From the sequence record NC_042116.1: DNA of 64,000 nt. One strand, 5' to 3'. This document shows, one piece after another, positions 15,198 to 47,900 of this stretch. A model generated the notes under the pieces. That model ran no database searches. It was not told the origin of the DNA and was given only the letters and a program-made list of their open reading frames with translations. The translations under genes and the position numbers were made by a program. The number at the start of each line of letters is the position of its first letter. The stretch's first letter is position 1.

Positions 15198-15227
15198 TTG
15201 AAACAACTAAAAAAATTGTGGTATAAT
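15198..15227 (+). promoter_or_regulatory. RNA-gene promoter class
   Basis: TTGAAAC-N14-TGGTATAAT upstream of Y-like RNA. Confidence 0.8.
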
Positions 15228-15380: not shown

Positions 15381-15410
15381 ATGAAACAAATCAAAAATTT
15401 GTGGTATAAT
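15381..15410 (+). promoter_or_regulatory. RNA-gene promoter class
   Basis: ATGAAAC-N14-TGGTATAAT. Confidence 0.8.
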
Positions 15411-19451: not shown

Positions 19452-19481
19452 TTGAAACGCCACAAGAAATTGTGGTATAAT
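19452..19481 (+). promoter_or_regulatory. RNA-gene promoter class
   Basis: TTGAAAC-N14-TGGTATAAT upstream of tRNA-Asn. Confidence 0.8.
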
Positions 19482-21789: not shown

Positions 21790-23173
21790 ATGAAATCACT
21801 AGTAGCTATGGTAAAAGACAAAAAAGTCTATTTTAGCCATTATCAAAACAACGAGTTATGGTACAGTACTGAATGCGGATTTATGTTTCCGGTTCCCGTA
21901 GCTGATACTGGTAACGCAGAATTTAAACAAGAAGATAAAGCCACTTTCTTCATGCGTTGGATTCGCAAACATCTTGAAATGATCGAGAATGAGCGAGTTC
22001 AGTTTGAATGAGAGAACCAATGTCTGATGAGAACTGGAAAGAAGTACATACTATAATTAACAATTACATAACCAACGGTGAAAATACCGTTTATGGATAT
22101 GTAACGTATGATTACTTTCCAAAGTACTGTTATATGATGGCAACTGGCTTTAGTTTTACAAATGAATACGTTCATTTTAACGGAAGCCGCCGCATTATAG
22201 ATCAAGTACTGTCAGAAGAATCTTTCTTTCAACAAAGTACAATCTATGATTTTTATGACTTAACACTCGAAGAAATCATAGCATTAAAAGAAATCTATAA
22301 ATTCATGCTAGGGGATTTTCCGTGAGGAAAATCCTTTTTTCGTTTCTGGAGTTCATGTTGAACGATATTAATACATTACTTAGACAATGCATAAAAATTA
22401 TCAAATCGTTTGACCATCCTATCACACGTGATGAAATTCAAATGTATGGTCTTGATAATTATATTCGAAATTTAAGAATTACTATGTATAACACCAGTAC
22501 TGATGTGTTATTTGATTTTGGTAGATATACACATGATAAAAAGTTTAATCATATTGGAATAATAAAAGTATCTAGTGAAATATTATGGTACATTTATTTT
22601 GGTGGAAATATAAGATTCAAAACTAATCTTACTGAAGAAGAAATATTTCAACAAAGTACTATTAATAATTATTATGATTTAGAGCCGGATATTGCAAAAA
22701 ATATATCAGAATTGATTTCATTATTAGAACACTTATGGAAATAAATTATGAAAGTTTTTGAAACATGTTTTTTATATGCAAGTACGGGTCTTGCAGCTAA
22801 AATTATTAGAAGTAAATACGACGATAAAATTCTGTTCTCTTATAAAGTACTATTAGATTTTGATTCTTCAATACAACAAAATGTATGTATATTCATAGTT
22901 ATTGTATACGTTGAAGATGAGACTTTTATTTTTGCATTTGGTATATCTGAAGATTATCCTGATATTGGAATTTCAGTTATGAAAGTACAAGGTAATAAAA
23001 CATTACATTTAAGTGATGTATGCAACGTAGAAGATTTGGAAGCACGTTTGTTCCAAATAGAAACTATTGTAGATGTGCATGATTTAGATACTACTATGAT
23101 AGATAAAATGCATAAGATTCGTGAAATATATTTGAAGCAAAAAGATGAAACAGTACTGAATAATATGGTATAA
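21790..23173 (+). CDS. hypothetical 21790-22011 plus three EExxFQxxT-family paralogs (22008-22325, 22322-22744, 22748-23173)
   Basis: LSEESFFQQSTIYD, LTEEEIFQQSTINN, LEARLFQIETIVD. Confidence 0.78.
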
Positions 23174-23174
23174 T
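23145..23174 (+). promoter_or_regulatory. RNA-gene promoter class
   Basis: ATGAAAC-N14-TGGTATAAT upstream of Pro-Pro-Val tRNA cluster. Confidence 0.8.
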
Positions 23175-31552: not shown

Positions 31553-31582
31553 TTGAAACAGCAGAAAAAAATGTGGTATAAT
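31553..31582 (+). promoter_or_regulatory. RNA-gene promoter class
   Basis: TTGAAAC-N14-TGGTATAAT upstream of initiator-like tRNA. Confidence 0.8.
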
Positions 31583-41455: not shown

Positions 41456-41691
41456 TATGAAAGAATATATTGTTGAATACTTTATGCCAAAAAGTTCAGT
41501 CCCAATGGCAACACGCACATTTGCACATTCAGAAGCCAATGCACGTGCAGCAGCAAAGAAAGAAAAAGGGAATGACATTATTATTCGCAGTACTCGCTTA
41601 GTATAATAAGCGTTAAAAATTTAAAAGCCAGTTCATTCTGGCTTTTTCTATTGGAAAAAATCAATTGTTGCATTTTTGTACGGAGATAAAT

Positions 41692-42684
41692 GTGAGCATT
41701 AAAAAACTAAACTTAGATGAAATTCAGGATGAGATTCTAGACGAGTGCTTTGAAAATGATGATAAAACACTTGACTCATTAGTAATCGATGAAGATGATT
41801 TCGATAATGAAAGTACTGAAGAAGTTATCGATAATGGTTTAACAATGGATAAAATTAAATCTAAAGTTAAATCAGATCAATACGTCAGTAATGAAGATTT
41901 AGTTCGTAAAGTTCAAAACAATATTGATGTTGAACGTTCTAAAGAACTTCTTATCATGTTTAATAGTGGTTTGGTTTACAATGAAGCAAAAAACTGTACT
42001 TGTAACATTCCATTTCAAGATAAAGTTCAATACGGTTTCGAAGGTCTAATCAAAGCCATTCATGGTTTTAATACTAATTTTAAAACACTTTTTAGTACTT
42101 ATGCTACAACTGCAATCCGTCAGCATATGTATCGTAATGGAAATAACGATGTGCGTATGGTCGCATTGCCTGAGCATCTTTCTATGTTCAATATCCGCAT
42201 CCAAGGCTTCATAGAGAGGTCAATGAATGATGCTGGTGGATACCCTACTCATGAGCAAATCGCGGCTGGTACGGGCATTGACATACGTTCAGTTAAGCGT
42301 ATAATGAACTACAACAGCAACACATTCAGCATTGATACCCCTATGGTACGTGGTGGTGATGAGGGGTCACAGCAGACTCTTAAAGATATGATTGCAGGGG
42401 ATAGTGCGGATTACTTTGTTGATGAACGTTGTGTCAGTAAAGATTTTCTAAGTACTATGGATGAAATATTGAATGAACTACTTGAACATGAGCGAGTACT
42501 TATCGGCTTAGTTCATGGATTAGATGGATATCGTACACATACTTTCGATGAAATTATTAGTACGGGATACATTGATAGTAATGGTTCATATGTTACTTCA
42601 AAGGCTACACTATCCCGCCGTTATAACAATATAATGGATAAAGTGCGTCGAATTGTGGAACGTAAAGAAATAAGTTTTGATTAA
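41692..42684 (+). CDS. sigma-70-family RNA polymerase sigma factor-like protein
   Basis: Region 2 QDKVQYGFEGLIKAI.GF...FSTYAT..IRQ; region 3 PTHEQIA...SIDTP; region 4 L.EHER.LI...HGL...TFDEI; GTG41692 with GGAG RBS. Confidence 0.85.
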   Translation: MSIKKLNLDEIQDEILDECFENDDKTLDSLVIDEDDFDNESTEEVIDNGLTMDKIKSKVKSDQYVSNEDLVRKVQNNIDVERSKELLIMFNSGLVYNEAKNCTCNIPFQDKVQYGFEGLIKAIHGFNTNFKTLFSTYATTAIRQHMYRNGNNDVRMVALPEHLSMFNIRIQGFIERSMNDAGGYPTHEQIAAGTGIDIRSVKRIMNYNSNTFSIDTPMVRGGDEGSQQTLKDMIAGDSADYFVDERCVSKDFLSTMDEILNELLEHERVLIGLVHGLDGYRTHTFDEIISTGYIDSNGSYVTSKATLSRRYNNIMDKVRRIVERKEISFD

Positions 42685-43416: not shown

Positions 43417-43677
43417 ATGGCTGTGGGTTTTGGTTCTTGTGATAACTTTCAGGAAACAATTCAGGCTACAGTGGATAATGGCATTGACTTTGCTCGTTCA
43501 CAATTACCTACTGGTGAATCTGAAAAGTTATGTTTAGACTGTGGAAATGAAATACCACAAAAACGTAGGGAAGTACTAAAAGGTGTAAAGTACTGTGTGA
43601 ACTGTCAAAGTATTAAAGATACTAAGATCAGTTCAATGTATAATCGTCGTGGATCTAAAGATTCACAATTGAGGTAA
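43417..43677 (+). CDS. DksA/TraR-family C4 zinc-finger protein (YbiI-like)
   Basis: MAVGFG...CLDCGNEIPQKRREVLKGVKYCVNCQ. Confidence 0.88.
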   Translation: MAVGFGSCDNFQETIQATVDNGIDFARSQLPTGESEKLCLDCGNEIPQKRREVLKGVKYCVNCQSIKDTKISSMYNRRGSKDSQLR

Positions 43678-43680
43678 TAA

Positions 43681-44284
43681 ATGACACATTTAAATAAAAG
43701 CAATCTTGTTGAAAACCATTCAAATATTCTGGAATTTGAATATAACGGATGTACTTTCTACCGTAATTCAAAACTTCGTCGGTTCCTGAATGAACTATTT
43801 GGTGCTACATTAGTAGCAGTTTACAGTACTAATAAAGATTCAGACGCAAATTATAGCTTAGATTGGAGTGGTGAGGATATAGTAACTGTAACTGCAAATG
43901 GTGTTGTTTCACATCTTGGTAACTCTGAGTGGGCACATTTTACTAAACTTTAATAAATTTATAGGTGCTTATATGTTAGAAGGTTTCACGAAAGTTGGTT
44001 CTGGTCATAGTCATAATAATGTACTACCAAAAGAAAGTGGTGCATATAATGTCGTGGTTATTTCACGTGATGGGCTTCCTGTTATTCAAGTAATGTACTT
44101 TGATAAAGATGCAGCAGATCGTTTTGAACGAGATCGCCAATGGATCTATTTTAAAATTTCAGAATATGGGTACTTTGAACATCATCGTCATAGTGGTGAA
44201 TCAATTGATGCGTGGAAGAAAATTGAAGGTGTTAATCTTAAAATTGTTCCTGAAAAAATTGAAATTTCATTCGACAATATTTAA
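43681..44284 (+). CDS. hypothetical proteins (43681-43953, 43973-44284)
   Basis: ORF track; RBSs. Confidence 0.72.
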
Positions 44285-44289
44285 AGAAT

Positions 44290-44319
44290 ATGAAACAGAT
44301 TAAAAAAATCTGGTATAAT
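44290..44319 (+). promoter_or_regulatory. RNA-gene promoter class
   Basis: ATGAAAC-N14-TGGTATAAT; no tRNA follows, only a long structured non-coding stretch. Confidence 0.75.
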
Positions 44320-44333
44320 CTATATGTAAAATT

Positions 44334-44885
44334 CTGTTTGATAGGGGTAAACTCGCCCCTAAAATTATAACCCTACTCCAATGAAAAGTAATTGGAGAGA
44401 TGAGAAGTTCAAACAGTTCGCAGAGCAGATGAAACCCGTTAGAGTACTAGCAGTCATACAAAGAGACATAAGACTACGAATCACGGCAATGCGGCTCTAT
44501 AAAGAAGTATATTTAATCATTACTAATACTTCCTTGATAGACATATAAGATGCATCTTACCATATATGATAAGGGAGATTATGCATCGAATTTGTACAAT
44601 ATAGATCCGTCCAGAATTTGATGATATAATCAAGTACTTGGATTGATTGTATAGTCCAAGTATTAAGTGAGCTAAAAACTCGACCGTTGTTAGAACTGAA
44701 ATAGGAAGAAATAGAACAACCCGCTTCCGTACTGTAAAGTAATTTTCAATACAATATTGCCGACGACTATCAGCGTCAGACTTTTCATCTCCCTGCGGGG
44801 GGATGAAATTGCCTCAACAAATCGCGTCAGTATTATTAGGTCAAGTACAATTAAAAATTGATTTTCTTGCAACGAAGTAAAAGAA
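44334..44885 (+). ncRNA. candidate large structured RNA (~550 nt)
   Basis: CTGTTTGA/TCAAACAG, TAGGGG/CCCCTA, CTCCAAT/ATTGGAG, GATGCAT/ATGCATC, TACTTGGA/TCCAAGTA, GGAAG/CTTCC, TTCATC/GATGAA; no credible ORF. Confidence 0.6.
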
Positions 44886-44890
44886 AATCC

Positions 44891-44919
44891 TTGACTTGCT
44901 TTAGCAAGGCGAGTACAAT
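44891..44919 (+). promoter_or_regulatory. promoter with hairpin in spacer
   Basis: TTGACT-17-TACAAT containing CTTGC-TTTA-GCAAG. Confidence 0.7.
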
Positions 44920-44953
44920 ATATTTCATTGAAGAAGTTATCTTTTAACAAAAA

Positions 44954-47900
44954 ATGAGGCATTCCAAAATGGGTGATATCTATTTAAAACTACGTCCAGA
45001 AGAACTTACTGTGGATGTATTAAAAAACCTTGATTTAAGTTCTTTAAATTCGGATGATCGTAGTCTTTTGTGTTCTATAGATGGTGCTCGTATGAAGTTG
45101 ACCACCCTTGATATACCCGTTCGGTTACAAAACAAATTGAATGATATATCAAACCTTACATATGATGAATGTGTTGCTATTATAAACAATAGTACTCGCG
45201 TCAGTACTGACATTCAACAAAAATATAATAATTATAGTATCAATTTATTATCAAAACATTTCAAAAAATTTGATCTATCTAACATCGAACGTCAAGAAAA
45301 TATTAATCTTGAATTTGTTAATAGTCATTGTAATGATATGGATATATCTGCATTCGTCCGAATTCGTATGAAACGTGGTGATGTTATGGATTTTTATGAA
45401 AATAAATCTGTTCGTAACAAACTATTGCGTATTGGTGGTATTAAATGGAGTGAAACTAAAGATGAAATGCGTAACTCTATATTAAATTTTGCACCTAATA
45501 CATTGGATAAAATTAATCCAGTACTGGATGAAATTTTCAATTTAACACTTAATAAAACTGTCTTTGCCAATTATTACGAGGATGGTAAAGGAAGTCATGG
45601 TGTTGATGCTATTGTTAATTTTTATATTAATAACTTTGATCCAGACGTAACTTATACATGGTCTGAATTTGTGAAAACATCTATTGATAAAAATCGCGAT
45701 GCATTAATTGATGTTTTTTGGAGTGATTATATCCAAGATAAAATCATTAATTGCCTAAAATAATTTTCTTTTACATGGCACATAATGTGTGCCATATAAC
45801 TAACTGTAGGACATAAAACTATGTTAGCTGCAAAATCAACAAAAACAAGTTTATTAGATTTAAGTATTGATGAAATTCGCCAAATTGCATGGCTTTATAT
45901 GAATGTTAATTCTTTTCAAGAAGATATGAATAATACTGATTTTTTACGCCGTGCTTATCTGGCTGATAAAGAATTACTTGTTAAGTTTTTAACAGATGAC
46001 GATATGATCAGGTGTTTATCGTTAGAAACTATTAACTTCATACTTGAAATGTTGGAAGATTCGTTATCTGAATTGTTTGATGATGATAAAATTAGTCGTT
46101 ATATTGTACTTAAACATCAATTACCAATTGAATTTTTAGAACGTTATGCTACAATACTTCCATTGTATCATGCAGAGCACCAATTATCTATTACCCCTGA
46201 ATTTTATTCTAAATATCATTCGCTTTTTGATGATGAAGCATTTTGGGGGCATTTTGCATCTAATCATACATCAGACTTTAATACTTGGGCTACATATAAT
46301 GATGGTGAATTAGTAGATAAAGTATTTGATAACTCAGTAACACGTTACTTTACAAAAGCTAAACTCATTGAACACAACATGATGGTTCCTAATTTTTATG
46401 ATAATGTAGTTAATGAACAACGTATTATGGCTGGAGATCCGTGTTCTGATGGTCAACGTTCATATGCAATTTGGTTACGTAAGTATCGTCGTACTTATAA
46501 TGATCAAACTGGTTATCCAACATGGGGACAACTTCTTGAATTGTTTGAAAAACATCCTCGTATGAATCATGATGGATATATTGATTGGTTGTTCAATCGT
46601 GTTGTACGTGACGAGTTTGATGAAGATGATGTAAGTATATCACTTGAAATTGACGTACAGCAGGTTGATGAAGACGAATATGAATATGAATATGGTGAAA
46701 AAGAACGTCATGAAGATGATGACGAAGAAGAAGAATCATGTGAAGAAATGTTGCACGATTAATAAAAAACATTAATATATTATGCCGAACAAAGTGTTCG
46801 GCATTTTCTTTATAAAAAGGCCACTACTAATGAGTAAAGTTAATGCAGTACACAAAGAACGTGTTGAAACGTTAGCTGAACTAATTTCAGCAATTGACAC
46901 TTATGGGACTGAAAATGTTACAATAAGATCAGTAGGTGATCTTAATGCCGTATTTAATTCAGATAGTACAATTAACGATTTGTATAATATTCTACTACCT
47001 AAGTTAAATGATTTTAGTGCTAAAGAACTATTTTCTAATATTATCAGTACCAATACTATAATTACACGTCATAAAGATGTACTTGGTATTTCTAAAAATA
47101 AACTTCTTGATAATTTATTTTATATGATTATTGAACGACGTATTATGATACATAATCTACCAAATAATACTAGTCTTAAACATTTAAATTTACTAGCAGA
47201 TCATGAGTTGGTTAATTTATATAATATTGAAAATATTAAATCTATCGACTTGGAATTTGTTCAAAAATATGGTAATAAAATGGATTTAAAACGTTTAAAT
47301 CGATGCACAAATAAACCAGAAGTACTTGAATACAGTTCAGTATTAGGTACTTCTTTGGAAAGTGAAGGTACAAAATGATTATTGAAATTGAATCAGTATG
47401 TGATGTAGAAAAAATTATTAAAAATAGCCATAGTTATACTGTTAAAAATGAAGATATTACCAAAGAAGTATTCATTGAATTCTTTGAAAAATGTTCTCCA
47501 TCTGAATATGAACGTCTATATTACCTTAACGTACTAAAGTACTACGATGAAGTACTAGATGATAATATTGCAAAAGTACTTCTATCTGGAAAATATGCAC
47601 TAAGTTGGCTACTTAATGAAGCTAAATTATCACCAACTATGATAACATATATTGTTGATAATCTTGAGGTTCCATTAGATACTATTATAGCAAAACAGCC
47701 AATAACTTTCGACCAAATAATTAAACTTTTATCTAATAAAAGTTTTCATCTTAATTCTGGTGACCTTGGTGAAGCAATTGGGTCAACTGGTAATATTGAA
47801 ATGGCAAAACAGTTCATTACAGAATGGGATAATATTTTACCATTAATGAATAAAAGTTTAAGGAATGTAGATTTATCAGAATTTCGTTACCATATGTTTA

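Follow-up and report, generated by a model that had tools for sequence, protein, structure and literature searches.

Large intricate RNAs are rare outside ribosomal RNA, RNase P and introns, and every new class of them has led to new biology. The question raised here is whether a 669-nt gap (44285-44953) between two plus-strand open reading frames (ORFs; 43898..44284 and 44954..45763) encodes such an RNA and, if so, what that RNA might do. The 64-kb window in which the gap lies, the whole stretch of DNA that was analysed, makes up the right-hand end of the 354,378-bp genome of Yersinia phage fHe-Yen9-04, a jumbo phage of the genus Eneladusvirus related to RaK2, 121Q, GAP32 and CBB. GenBank carries no annotation within the gap. 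An initial annotation, made from the letters of the window, had proposed a large structured phage RNA there and had compared its size with that of the ornate RNAs GOLLD and ROOL.

A conserved element without conserved reading frames

The sequence of the gap is conserved as DNA in 62 phage records, each of which has four or five matching places. Megablast with a 6-kb query still matched GAP32, CBB, XbC2 and Kaldavass in the RNA part alone (78-82% identity), so in these four relatives the RNA is better conserved than the adjacent proteins. The plus-strand RNA gene that the initial annotation had placed at 44334-44885 stands, with a corrected span that begins at approximately 44326 and reaches at least 44830, perhaps approximately 44890, giving an RNA of ~500 nt. 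GC content is 37% in the element and 31% in its flanks.

The gap had been said to hold no credible ORF, and its ORFs are indeed short and vary in position, frame and length across 52 homologues: the longest plus-strand ORF has a median of 46 aa (range 0-92), and copy A of CBB has no plus-strand ORF of 30 aa or more. Short ORFs annotated as 'hypothetical protein' lie in or overlap homologues of the RNA in several GenBank records (GAP32, BF and an Erwinia phage), and a 37-aa ORF, GAP32_503A, is annotated in the GAP32 homologue. These annotated ORFs are unconserved and look spurious.

A promoter class associated with RNA genes

A TGAAAC motif at the -35 position (44291..44296, plus strand), 17 bp ahead of the -10 and found at eight sites in the window, is followed by an extended -10 element, TGGTATAAT (44311..44319), that is invariant across all five paralogues of the RNA described below. 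Transcription is predicted to start at approximately 44326. The composite motif GAAAC-N14-TGGTATAAT has eight occurrences in the window, the eighth of which (44292-44319) precedes this RNA; the other seven are at 684-711, 2101-2128, 15200-15227, 15383-15410, 19454-19481, 23147-23174 and 31555-31582. A tRNA gene begins 10-24 nt downstream of five of the eight sites, and at two others the next tRNA is 258-441 nt away, near tRNA-Glu; the tRNA genes behind these sites include a suppressor tRNA with a CUA anticodon (2146-2221). The earlier reading of this site as the eighth RNA-gene promoter therefore holds, since the TGAAAC/TGGTATAAT class otherwise stands ahead of tRNA and small-RNA genes in the window. 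TGAAACG at -35 corresponds to the divergent RpoD-like promoter class described for CBB and GAP32, which in CBB also fronts DNA-synthesis genes (PMC5259590).

Just upstream of the RNA gene, annotation from related records places genes for an RpoD-like sigma factor (41665-42684) and a DksA-like zinc-finger protein (43417-43677). Elsewhere in the window, Rfam tRNA matches at 7544-7657 and 9377-9497 are 114 and 121 nt long, far over tRNA length, and ARAGORN calls neither.

Covariation establishes a folded plus-strand RNA

An alignment of 52 non-identical homologues was scanned for covarying helices, and pairs were then counted for each helix alongside register-shifted controls. Over the whole RNA, 91 pairs in 18 helices were tested; 92.8-96.3% were paired, against 31-42% in the register-shifted controls, compensatory changes occurred at 67 of the 91 pairs, and 17 of the 18 helices were supported. 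In the 5' domain (46 pairs), 96.3% of cells were paired (slid controls 31-41%), both sides had changed at 34 pairs (slid controls 12-17) and the covariation score was 0.506 (slid controls at most 0.08). The corresponding values for the 3' domain (45 pairs) were 92.8% (slid controls 35-42%), 33 pairs (slid controls 10-16) and 0.449 (slid controls at most 0.09), and in each domain none of 500 shuffles reached the observed score. RNAalifold independently recovered helices P9, P10 and P10a. A P11 hairpin, GACGA/UCGUC, is unsupported, with 71% pairing and no compensation.

Four of the helices are pseudoknots: a GNA/UN'C clamp, an AUG/CAU pairing, P8 with respect to P9 and P10, and the helix designated PK. 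The single sequence folds better than all 100 shuffles on the plus strand (z = -3.6), but the minus-strand fold is also stable (z = -2.95), so thermodynamics alone cannot settle the strand. Many G-U pairs exist on the plus strand only, one P10 pair being G-U in 30 of 51 sequences, and their frequency identifies the plus strand as the folded one. The region constitutes a gene of its own, encoding a plus-strand, ~0.5-kb, multi-pseudoknotted non-coding RNA. The initial annotation had counted at least seven strong helices and had named covariation among homologues as one of the properties on which its proposal hung; 17 helices are now backed by covariation, with 67 compensated pairs and a score that 0 of 500 shuffles reach.

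These data also bear on whether the element is only a repeat at the DNA level, either a set of protein sites or a mobile element whose fold is irrelevant, or else a stretch that carries small ORFs. Proteins could bind at the invariant blocks and short direct repeats, short ORFs are present and GAP32_503A is annotated inside a homologue. However, the 67 compensatory pairs and the strand-specific G-U pairs demand a folded plus-strand nucleic acid, the ORFs are unconserved and no transposase or integrase genes neighbour the copies, leaving such an explanation with a negligible probability.

Architecture of the RNA

All positions given here are on the plus strand. The 5' end is formed by Domain 1 (44334..44416), in which P1 (44334-41 with 44409-16; 99.3% paired, seven of eight pairs compensated) surrounds two hairpins, P1a (44343-59; 95% paired, five of five compensated) and P1b (44373-99), the latter with a conserved loop, GAAAAGUA, and a pairing of 86-88% that is lowered partly by a one-column misalignment. 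The 3' strand of P1 is flanked by the 3-bp GNA/UN'C pseudoknot (44404-06 with 44417-19), which is 100% paired and whose middle pair is U-A in 29 sequences, A-U in 17 and C-G in six. P2 (44422-26 with 44494-98; three compensated pairs) and P3 (44436-39 with 44483-86), both 100% paired, enclose a swappable insert (44441-44481) that has a long form in this copy and is absent from most family members. Over the 60 nt between the conserved P3 anchors, no difference separates this copy (copy E) from copy D (~260,500), 74 kb away in the same genome, whereas copy E of phage BF, its nearest orthologue, has a different, short P3 module. These sequences indicate recent gene conversion between paralogues D and E of fHe-Yen9-04.

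A long-range pseudoknot then joins AUG (44489-91) to CAU (44542-44); it is 100% paired, with G-C replaced by A-U in 12 sequences and U-A by C-G in one. Between and beyond its strands lie the P4 hairpin (44504-09 with 44527-32; 97% paired, six of six compensated) and the P5 hairpin (44546-50 with 44555-59; 95% paired, two compensated), separated by an invariant GAUAGACAUAU. In the alignment these are followed (44571..44632) by an invariant AAGGGAG (44571-77) and a hairpin with a conserved 17-nt loop, ACAAUAUAGAUCCGUCC (44596-44612). The loop module is relocated in the B and D copies, and it probably makes a tertiary contact or binds a protein. AAGGGAG was considered as a Shine-Dalgarno-like ribosome-binding site and rejected, the start codons and frames that follow it being unconserved in the alignment.

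The P6 hairpin (44633-42 with 44655-64) is 90% paired and compensated at all ten pairs. Its loop provides one strand of the 7-bp PK, in which AUUGUAU (44646-52) pairs with AUACAAU (44749-55); PK is 99.6% paired and compensated at five of seven pairs. Pairing is kept in every paralogue, and the sequence is specific to each (GUCGAAU/AUUCGAC in D, UUCAUGU/ACAUGAA in A and CUGAAUU/AAUUCAG in B), except that copies C and E have a common code. The strands of PK bracket the 3' core (44668..44748), which comprises P7 (44668-71 with 44679-82), P8 (44686-90 with 44716-20), P9 (44697-701 with 44744-48), P10 (44704-08 with 44724-28) and P10a (44731-33 with 44738-40). P8 is knotted with P9 and P10, and each of these three helices is 100% paired with three or four compensated pairs.

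Beyond the knotted body lie two direct repeats, R1 (AUCAGCGUCAG, 44769..44779) and R2 (AUCGCGUCAG, 44821..44830), the second within a conserved block, CAACAAAUC-CGUCAGUAU. Between them is the P12 hairpin (44783..44808), composed of a C-rich strand, a UGCG loop and an invariant GGGGGGAUG, in which the 5' strand alone varies (C/U opposite G). Five of the seven G6 runs on the plus strand of the whole genome fall in the five copies of the RNA. The repeats (10-11 nt; AUC-N-CGUCAG, both ending CGUCAG) flank the G-rich hairpin in all 52 homologues, and the variable positions of R1 change in step with those of R2 at each locus, by identity and not by complementarity. One position is U/U in 40 members and C/C in 12, and another has the same base in 45 of 52, with G/G among E copies only in two Yersinia phages. 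A search for a third strand complementary to both R1 and R2 found none.

The paralogues differ in their terminator-like hairpins, which lie, with a U7 run, between the knotted body and the GGGGGGAUG hairpin in the B, C and D copies, and directly after the promoter in the A copies. At the far 3' side, a hairpin (44860-68 with 44881-89) precedes a promoter-like TTGACT-17-TACAAT (44891-44919), together spanning 44860..44919. The spacer of the promoter-like site holds a hairpin that covaries between paralogues (CUUGC/GCAAG, CUAAC/GUUAG, CAUUC/GAAUG), and the block may be where the RNA ends on its 3' side or may serve as promoter for the gene that follows. A conserved hairpin followed by a TTGAC(A/T) -35-like box is also found after copies B, C and D; since the genes next to copy C are on the opposite strand, the block may be part of the RNA and not a promoter.

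Comparison with known RNA families

Searches of Rfam 15 with cmscan covered the whole window at the gathering threshold, and the region and five other family members in E-value mode. No family matched the region at E-values up to 10, including group I introns, GOLLD, ROOL, RNase P and tmRNA, and the same five, which the initial annotation had singled out for checking, gave zero matches in the six family members. Hits to mir-2235, snoTBR5, STnc370, Arrc14 and rhtB were dismissed as chance matches. The covariance models of GOLLD and ROOL matched none of the six members at either gathering or E-value thresholds, and besides the lack of Rfam matches to RNase P RNA or tmRNA, ARAGORN calls no tmRNA. 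The motif ACAGAAC..CCCGCUU bears no more than a resemblance to the conserved region of RNase P, and its bases are engaged here in P8 and P10. An rRNA mimic was likewise rejected: there is no LSU or SSU match, and likenesses to the sarcin-ricin loop and GTPase centre are short strings whose bases covary in other helices.

The initial annotation had noted a weak resemblance to a group I intron core, with AAGACTAC and GTATAGTCC as the two strands of a P7. This did not survive the alignment: AUUGUAU (44646-44652) pairs with AUACAAU (44749-44755), and AAGACTAC is in the optional insert. A group I intron (RF00028) was rejected on the same grounds, having no match at E ≤ 10, with the GUAUAG strand paired to AUACAAU and AAGACUAC lying in the optional insert. 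The accompanying remark that the RNA interrupts no gene extends to all copies, which are intergenic with unrelated neighbours, and this too speaks against an intron.

Another prospect is a new large ribozyme that processes itself or acts on other RNAs, with R1 and R2 as cleavage or ligation sites. The invariant single-stranded blocks within a knotted core are as in large ribozymes, and the hairpin flanked by two identical short motifs would suit such sites, but no known ribozyme family is matched and no gene is interrupted; we consider a ribozyme very unlikely.

RNA-seq of PA5oct, a related jumbo phage, defined two 'lncRNAs' of 451 nt and 619 nt, ncRNA002 and ncRNA004 (PMC7318152). These resemble the present RNA as long non-coding transcripts in a relative of RaK2-like phages, but neither BLAST nor a 3'-domain covariance model found a homologue in PA5oct, and the two were rejected as relatives. 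Full-text literature searches found no description of the RNA family, although fragments of it might be present among the 10,006 candidate viral RNAs of PMC10690425, and the CBB paper makes no mention of non-coding or intergenic elements (PMC5259590). The RNA is a new family, with neither an Rfam match nor a literature description found. The earlier proposal of a large phage non-coding RNA outside any assigned class is upheld by its covariation, its conservation above that of flanking genes and the absence of Rfam matches. It belongs to the 'large ornate ncRNA' class in a descriptive sense, not as a homology family, being longer than ~400 nt and non-coding with covariation-supported junctions and pseudoknots.

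Among RNAs with this description, GOLLD (RF01998) and ROOL (RF03087) are alike in being ~500 nt, phage-borne and rich in helices and pseudoknots, in genomes rich in tRNA genes. The present RNA differs from them in having five diverged paralogues in each genome, evenly spaced at fixed sites, and in matching neither covariance model. The phi29 pRNA is also a phage-encoded structured RNA and forms a five-membered assembly, which invites comparison with the five copies here as a numerical coincidence only; it is a 174-nt homo-oligomer from a single gene with no similarity to this RNA, and T4-like packaging motors need no RNA.

Five syntenic paralogues

fHe-Yen9-04 has five copies of the RNA, all on the plus strand, at approximately 24.6, 93.2, 174.2, 260.4 and 334.7 kb. 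Five syntenic copies are also present in Serratia phage BF, GAP32, CBB, XbC2 and one IMG/VR genome, and in Eneladusvirus and Mimasvirus phages all five paralogues keep the plus strand and their sites. A tree resolves five paralogue clades, A-E, which are older than the Eneladusvirus-Mimasvirus split, and places the four copies of 121Q together in a cluster. A pattern specified at 14 bases found 45 further IMG/VR loci, nearly all in fragments or in genomes of ~350-380 kb.

The 3'-domain covariance model identified at least three clear copies in RaK2 and four in 121Q. Those in the RaK2 record (NC_019526) have their 3' domains at 7159-7354, 191588-191771 and 279937-280127 and are mutually too diverged for BLAST; two of them lie 184 kb apart, which suggests that RaK2 has additional copies of still greater divergence.

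The genes neighbouring the five copies are mutually unrelated, and copy C of CBB lies on the plus strand, with the genes on either side of it, those for endonuclease VII and gp249, on the minus strand. It follows that the element is not a leader and does not belong to a conserved operon. A cis-regulatory leader for downstream genes, such as a processive antitermination RNA of the put or EAR type, would account for the strong promoter, for the terminator-like hairpins (after the promoter in A copies, internal in B, C and D) and for the shared strand of most genes. Yet the opposite-strand genes flanking copy C largely refute it, the downstream genes differ and are unrelated between copies, and the gene after copy E has its own promoter, which together make a leader extremely improbable.

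Even spacing of the copies

The copies of fHe-Yen9-04 are separated by gaps of 69, 81, 86 and 74 kb, and those of the complete IMG/VR genome by 67, 80, 82, 63 and 74 kb. For CBB, whose physical ends were inferred by its authors from read depth (PMC5259590), the distances from end to end are 32, 62, 80, 84, 78 and 42 kb, so that the end distances (32 and 42 kb) are approximately half of the inner gaps (62-84 kb). The farthest point from any copy is 42.1 kb away, compared with 37.8 kb for the optimum with five sites (P ~1.5e-5 for random placement). Under a circular model, P is 1.6e-4 for the IMG/VR genome, ~9e-4 for CBB and GAP32 and 2.3e-3 for fHe-Yen9-04, values that amount to one or two evolutionary observations since the genomes share ancestry. 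The circular statistic is the only one applied to the IMG/VR genome, whose 'terminal repeat' is a 123-bp assembly overlap. The spacing of the five copies is far more even than chance and is maintained (P ~1e-3 to 1e-5). The four copies of 121Q are spaced unevenly, with gaps of 55, 79, 102 and 112 kb.

The five-paralogue, evenly spaced layout lay beyond the view of the initial annotation and is the most unusual feature of the RNA. We know of no other non-coding RNA gene with about five diverged copies at near-optimal even spacing. Avoidance of recombination was set aside as its cause by argument: ectopic exchange in a pool of replicating phage DNA is mostly intermolecular, and its cost should be independent of distance. 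We rate a position-dependent role of some kind at slightly under an even chance.

The spacing is also a difficulty for a trans-acting, protein-binding scaffold, in which the RNA would form a ribonucleoprotein serving tRNA or translation biology or counter-defence and the paralogues would be different specificity modules. The promoter class would co-regulate such an RNA with tRNA genes, the conserved single-stranded loops GAAAAGUA and CAUAGUUUGUA and the 17-nt module offer binding sites in keeping with it, and modules are exchanged between paralogues. No partner protein gene is conserved beside the five copies, however, no likeness to rRNA, tRNA, tmRNA or RNase P was found and the even spacing is unaccounted for; a scaffold of this kind is unlikely.

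Signals in environmental libraries

In three RNA-labelled wastewater libraries, short contigs were recovered inside the element only and none from the flanking genes. Depth over the element was ~15 in two of the runs and ~3 in the third; two of the three runs are flagged as probably DNA, and the data are contigs that carry neither ends nor strand. A DNA library had a depth of 30 in the flanks and 30-87 inside the element, and a conserved sequence present in five copies assembles more readily. A 121Q-type copy was present in RNA-labelled libraries of several independent studies. The wastewater libraries are suggestive only of the element being made as RNA.

ROOL and GOLLD are phage-associated and reportedly form RNA-only cages. 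The present RNA could act in trans in the same manner, being produced together with the phage tRNAs and assembling into homo- or hetero-oligomeric particles with PK as an intermolecular contact. Its size and complexity fit such an assembly, as do its use of a tRNA promoter class in a phage rich in tRNA genes, the PK sequence codes carried by individual paralogues and its occurrence in RNA-labelled libraries. Against this, it matches neither ROOL nor GOLLD in sequence or structure, copies C and E have identical PK codes, and the even spacing, fixed strand and synteny are unaccounted for, so that we regard self-assembly as rather doubtful. Taken together, the trans-acting roles (assembly like that of ROOL and GOLLD, a ribonucleoprotein scaffold or a ribozyme) come close to, and fall short of, an evenly balanced prospect.

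A candidate role in replication initiation

The single mechanism that we favour most, tentatively and at well below even likelihood, is that the RNA acts at its own locus and that the five loci are replication-initiation zones. Even spacing, with half-size distances at the ends of a linear genome, is what would be expected of two-way spread from each site, of which replication is the classic example. Put more specifically, the five genes might be RNA-based origins at which a tethered, knotted RNA licenses and primes bidirectional replication, their near-optimal spacing minimising copying time; this proposal, too, is possible and clearly less probable than its negation.

At T4 ori(uvsY) and ori(34), middle-promoter transcripts serve as R-loop primers. 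In the proposed model, host RNA polymerase would initiate at the middle-type promoter, and the 5' two-thirds of the RNA would fold into a compact knotted body that retains its tether to the template. The 3' part (R1, the optional hairpin and U-run, the G6 hairpin and R2) would then stall or end transcription, with the RNA pairing with the template. The result would be an R-loop or primer from which forks leave both ways, comparable to T4 ori(uvsY)/ori(34) and ColE1 RNA II, with the folded body serving to license the replisome or to recruit it. Pairing of the RNA with nearby template or a second DNA site fits both the G6 run and the identical variable bases of R1 and R2.

To our knowledge, T4 origins require a downstream unwinding element but no conserved RNA fold, and they are not known to encode a structured RNA. 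By contrast, the RNA fold is strongly conserved here and there is no AT-rich unwinding element: downstream of the copies none was exceptional, the best 40-bp mean AT being 0.77, below the genome 95th percentile of 0.80. The TGAAAC -35 and extended -10 motif correspond to the middle-class promoter of a T4-type origin. Further likenesses to T4 ori(uvsY)/oriF and ori(34)/oriG are T4-like replication genes, UvsW, the middle-type promoter and several sites per genome (PMC5259590). CBB encodes T4-like replication genes, UvsW and two RNase H enzymes, with no gp59 helicase loader (PMC5259590), and an origin role would fit a T4-like replisome with UvsW and RNase H, without gp59, and a promoter class that serves DNA synthesis.

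ColE1 RNA II is likewise a structured, promoter-driven RNA of ~0.5 kb with a G-run, and the proposed model shares with it action in cis on its own template. The two are not homologous, and nothing equivalent to the antisense partner RNA I was found here; the present fold is far more complex, and one plasmid origin contrasts with five loci on a phage chromosome, where an R-loop is only proposed.

Several observations count against RNA-based origins. Eighteen helices and four pseudoknots exceed the needs of any known primer RNA, GC skew over the RNA as a whole is just 0.04, the promoter class is common to tRNA genes, 121Q has four unevenly spaced copies, and occurrence in RNA-labelled wastewater libraries suits a stable trans-acting RNA. 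No turn in GC skew was seen at the copies, in a test of little power given that skew tracks the coding strand. Recombination-driven phage replication may leave no GC-skew signal.

Significance

The family is well suited to study, with abundant covariation and with cultured phages whose hosts are E. coli, Yersinia, Serratia, Erwinia, Pectobacterium and Cronobacter, and its five-copy geometry allows a simple test of a structured RNA as a positional element on DNA. Should the RNA act in trans after all, it would still add a new family to the puzzle posed by RNAs of the ROOL and GOLLD type and would call for the correction of annotation in dozens of phage genomes. The finding bears on how jumbo phages start replication and, if the loci are indeed origins, they would constitute a new class of origin, defined by conserved RNA tertiary structure.
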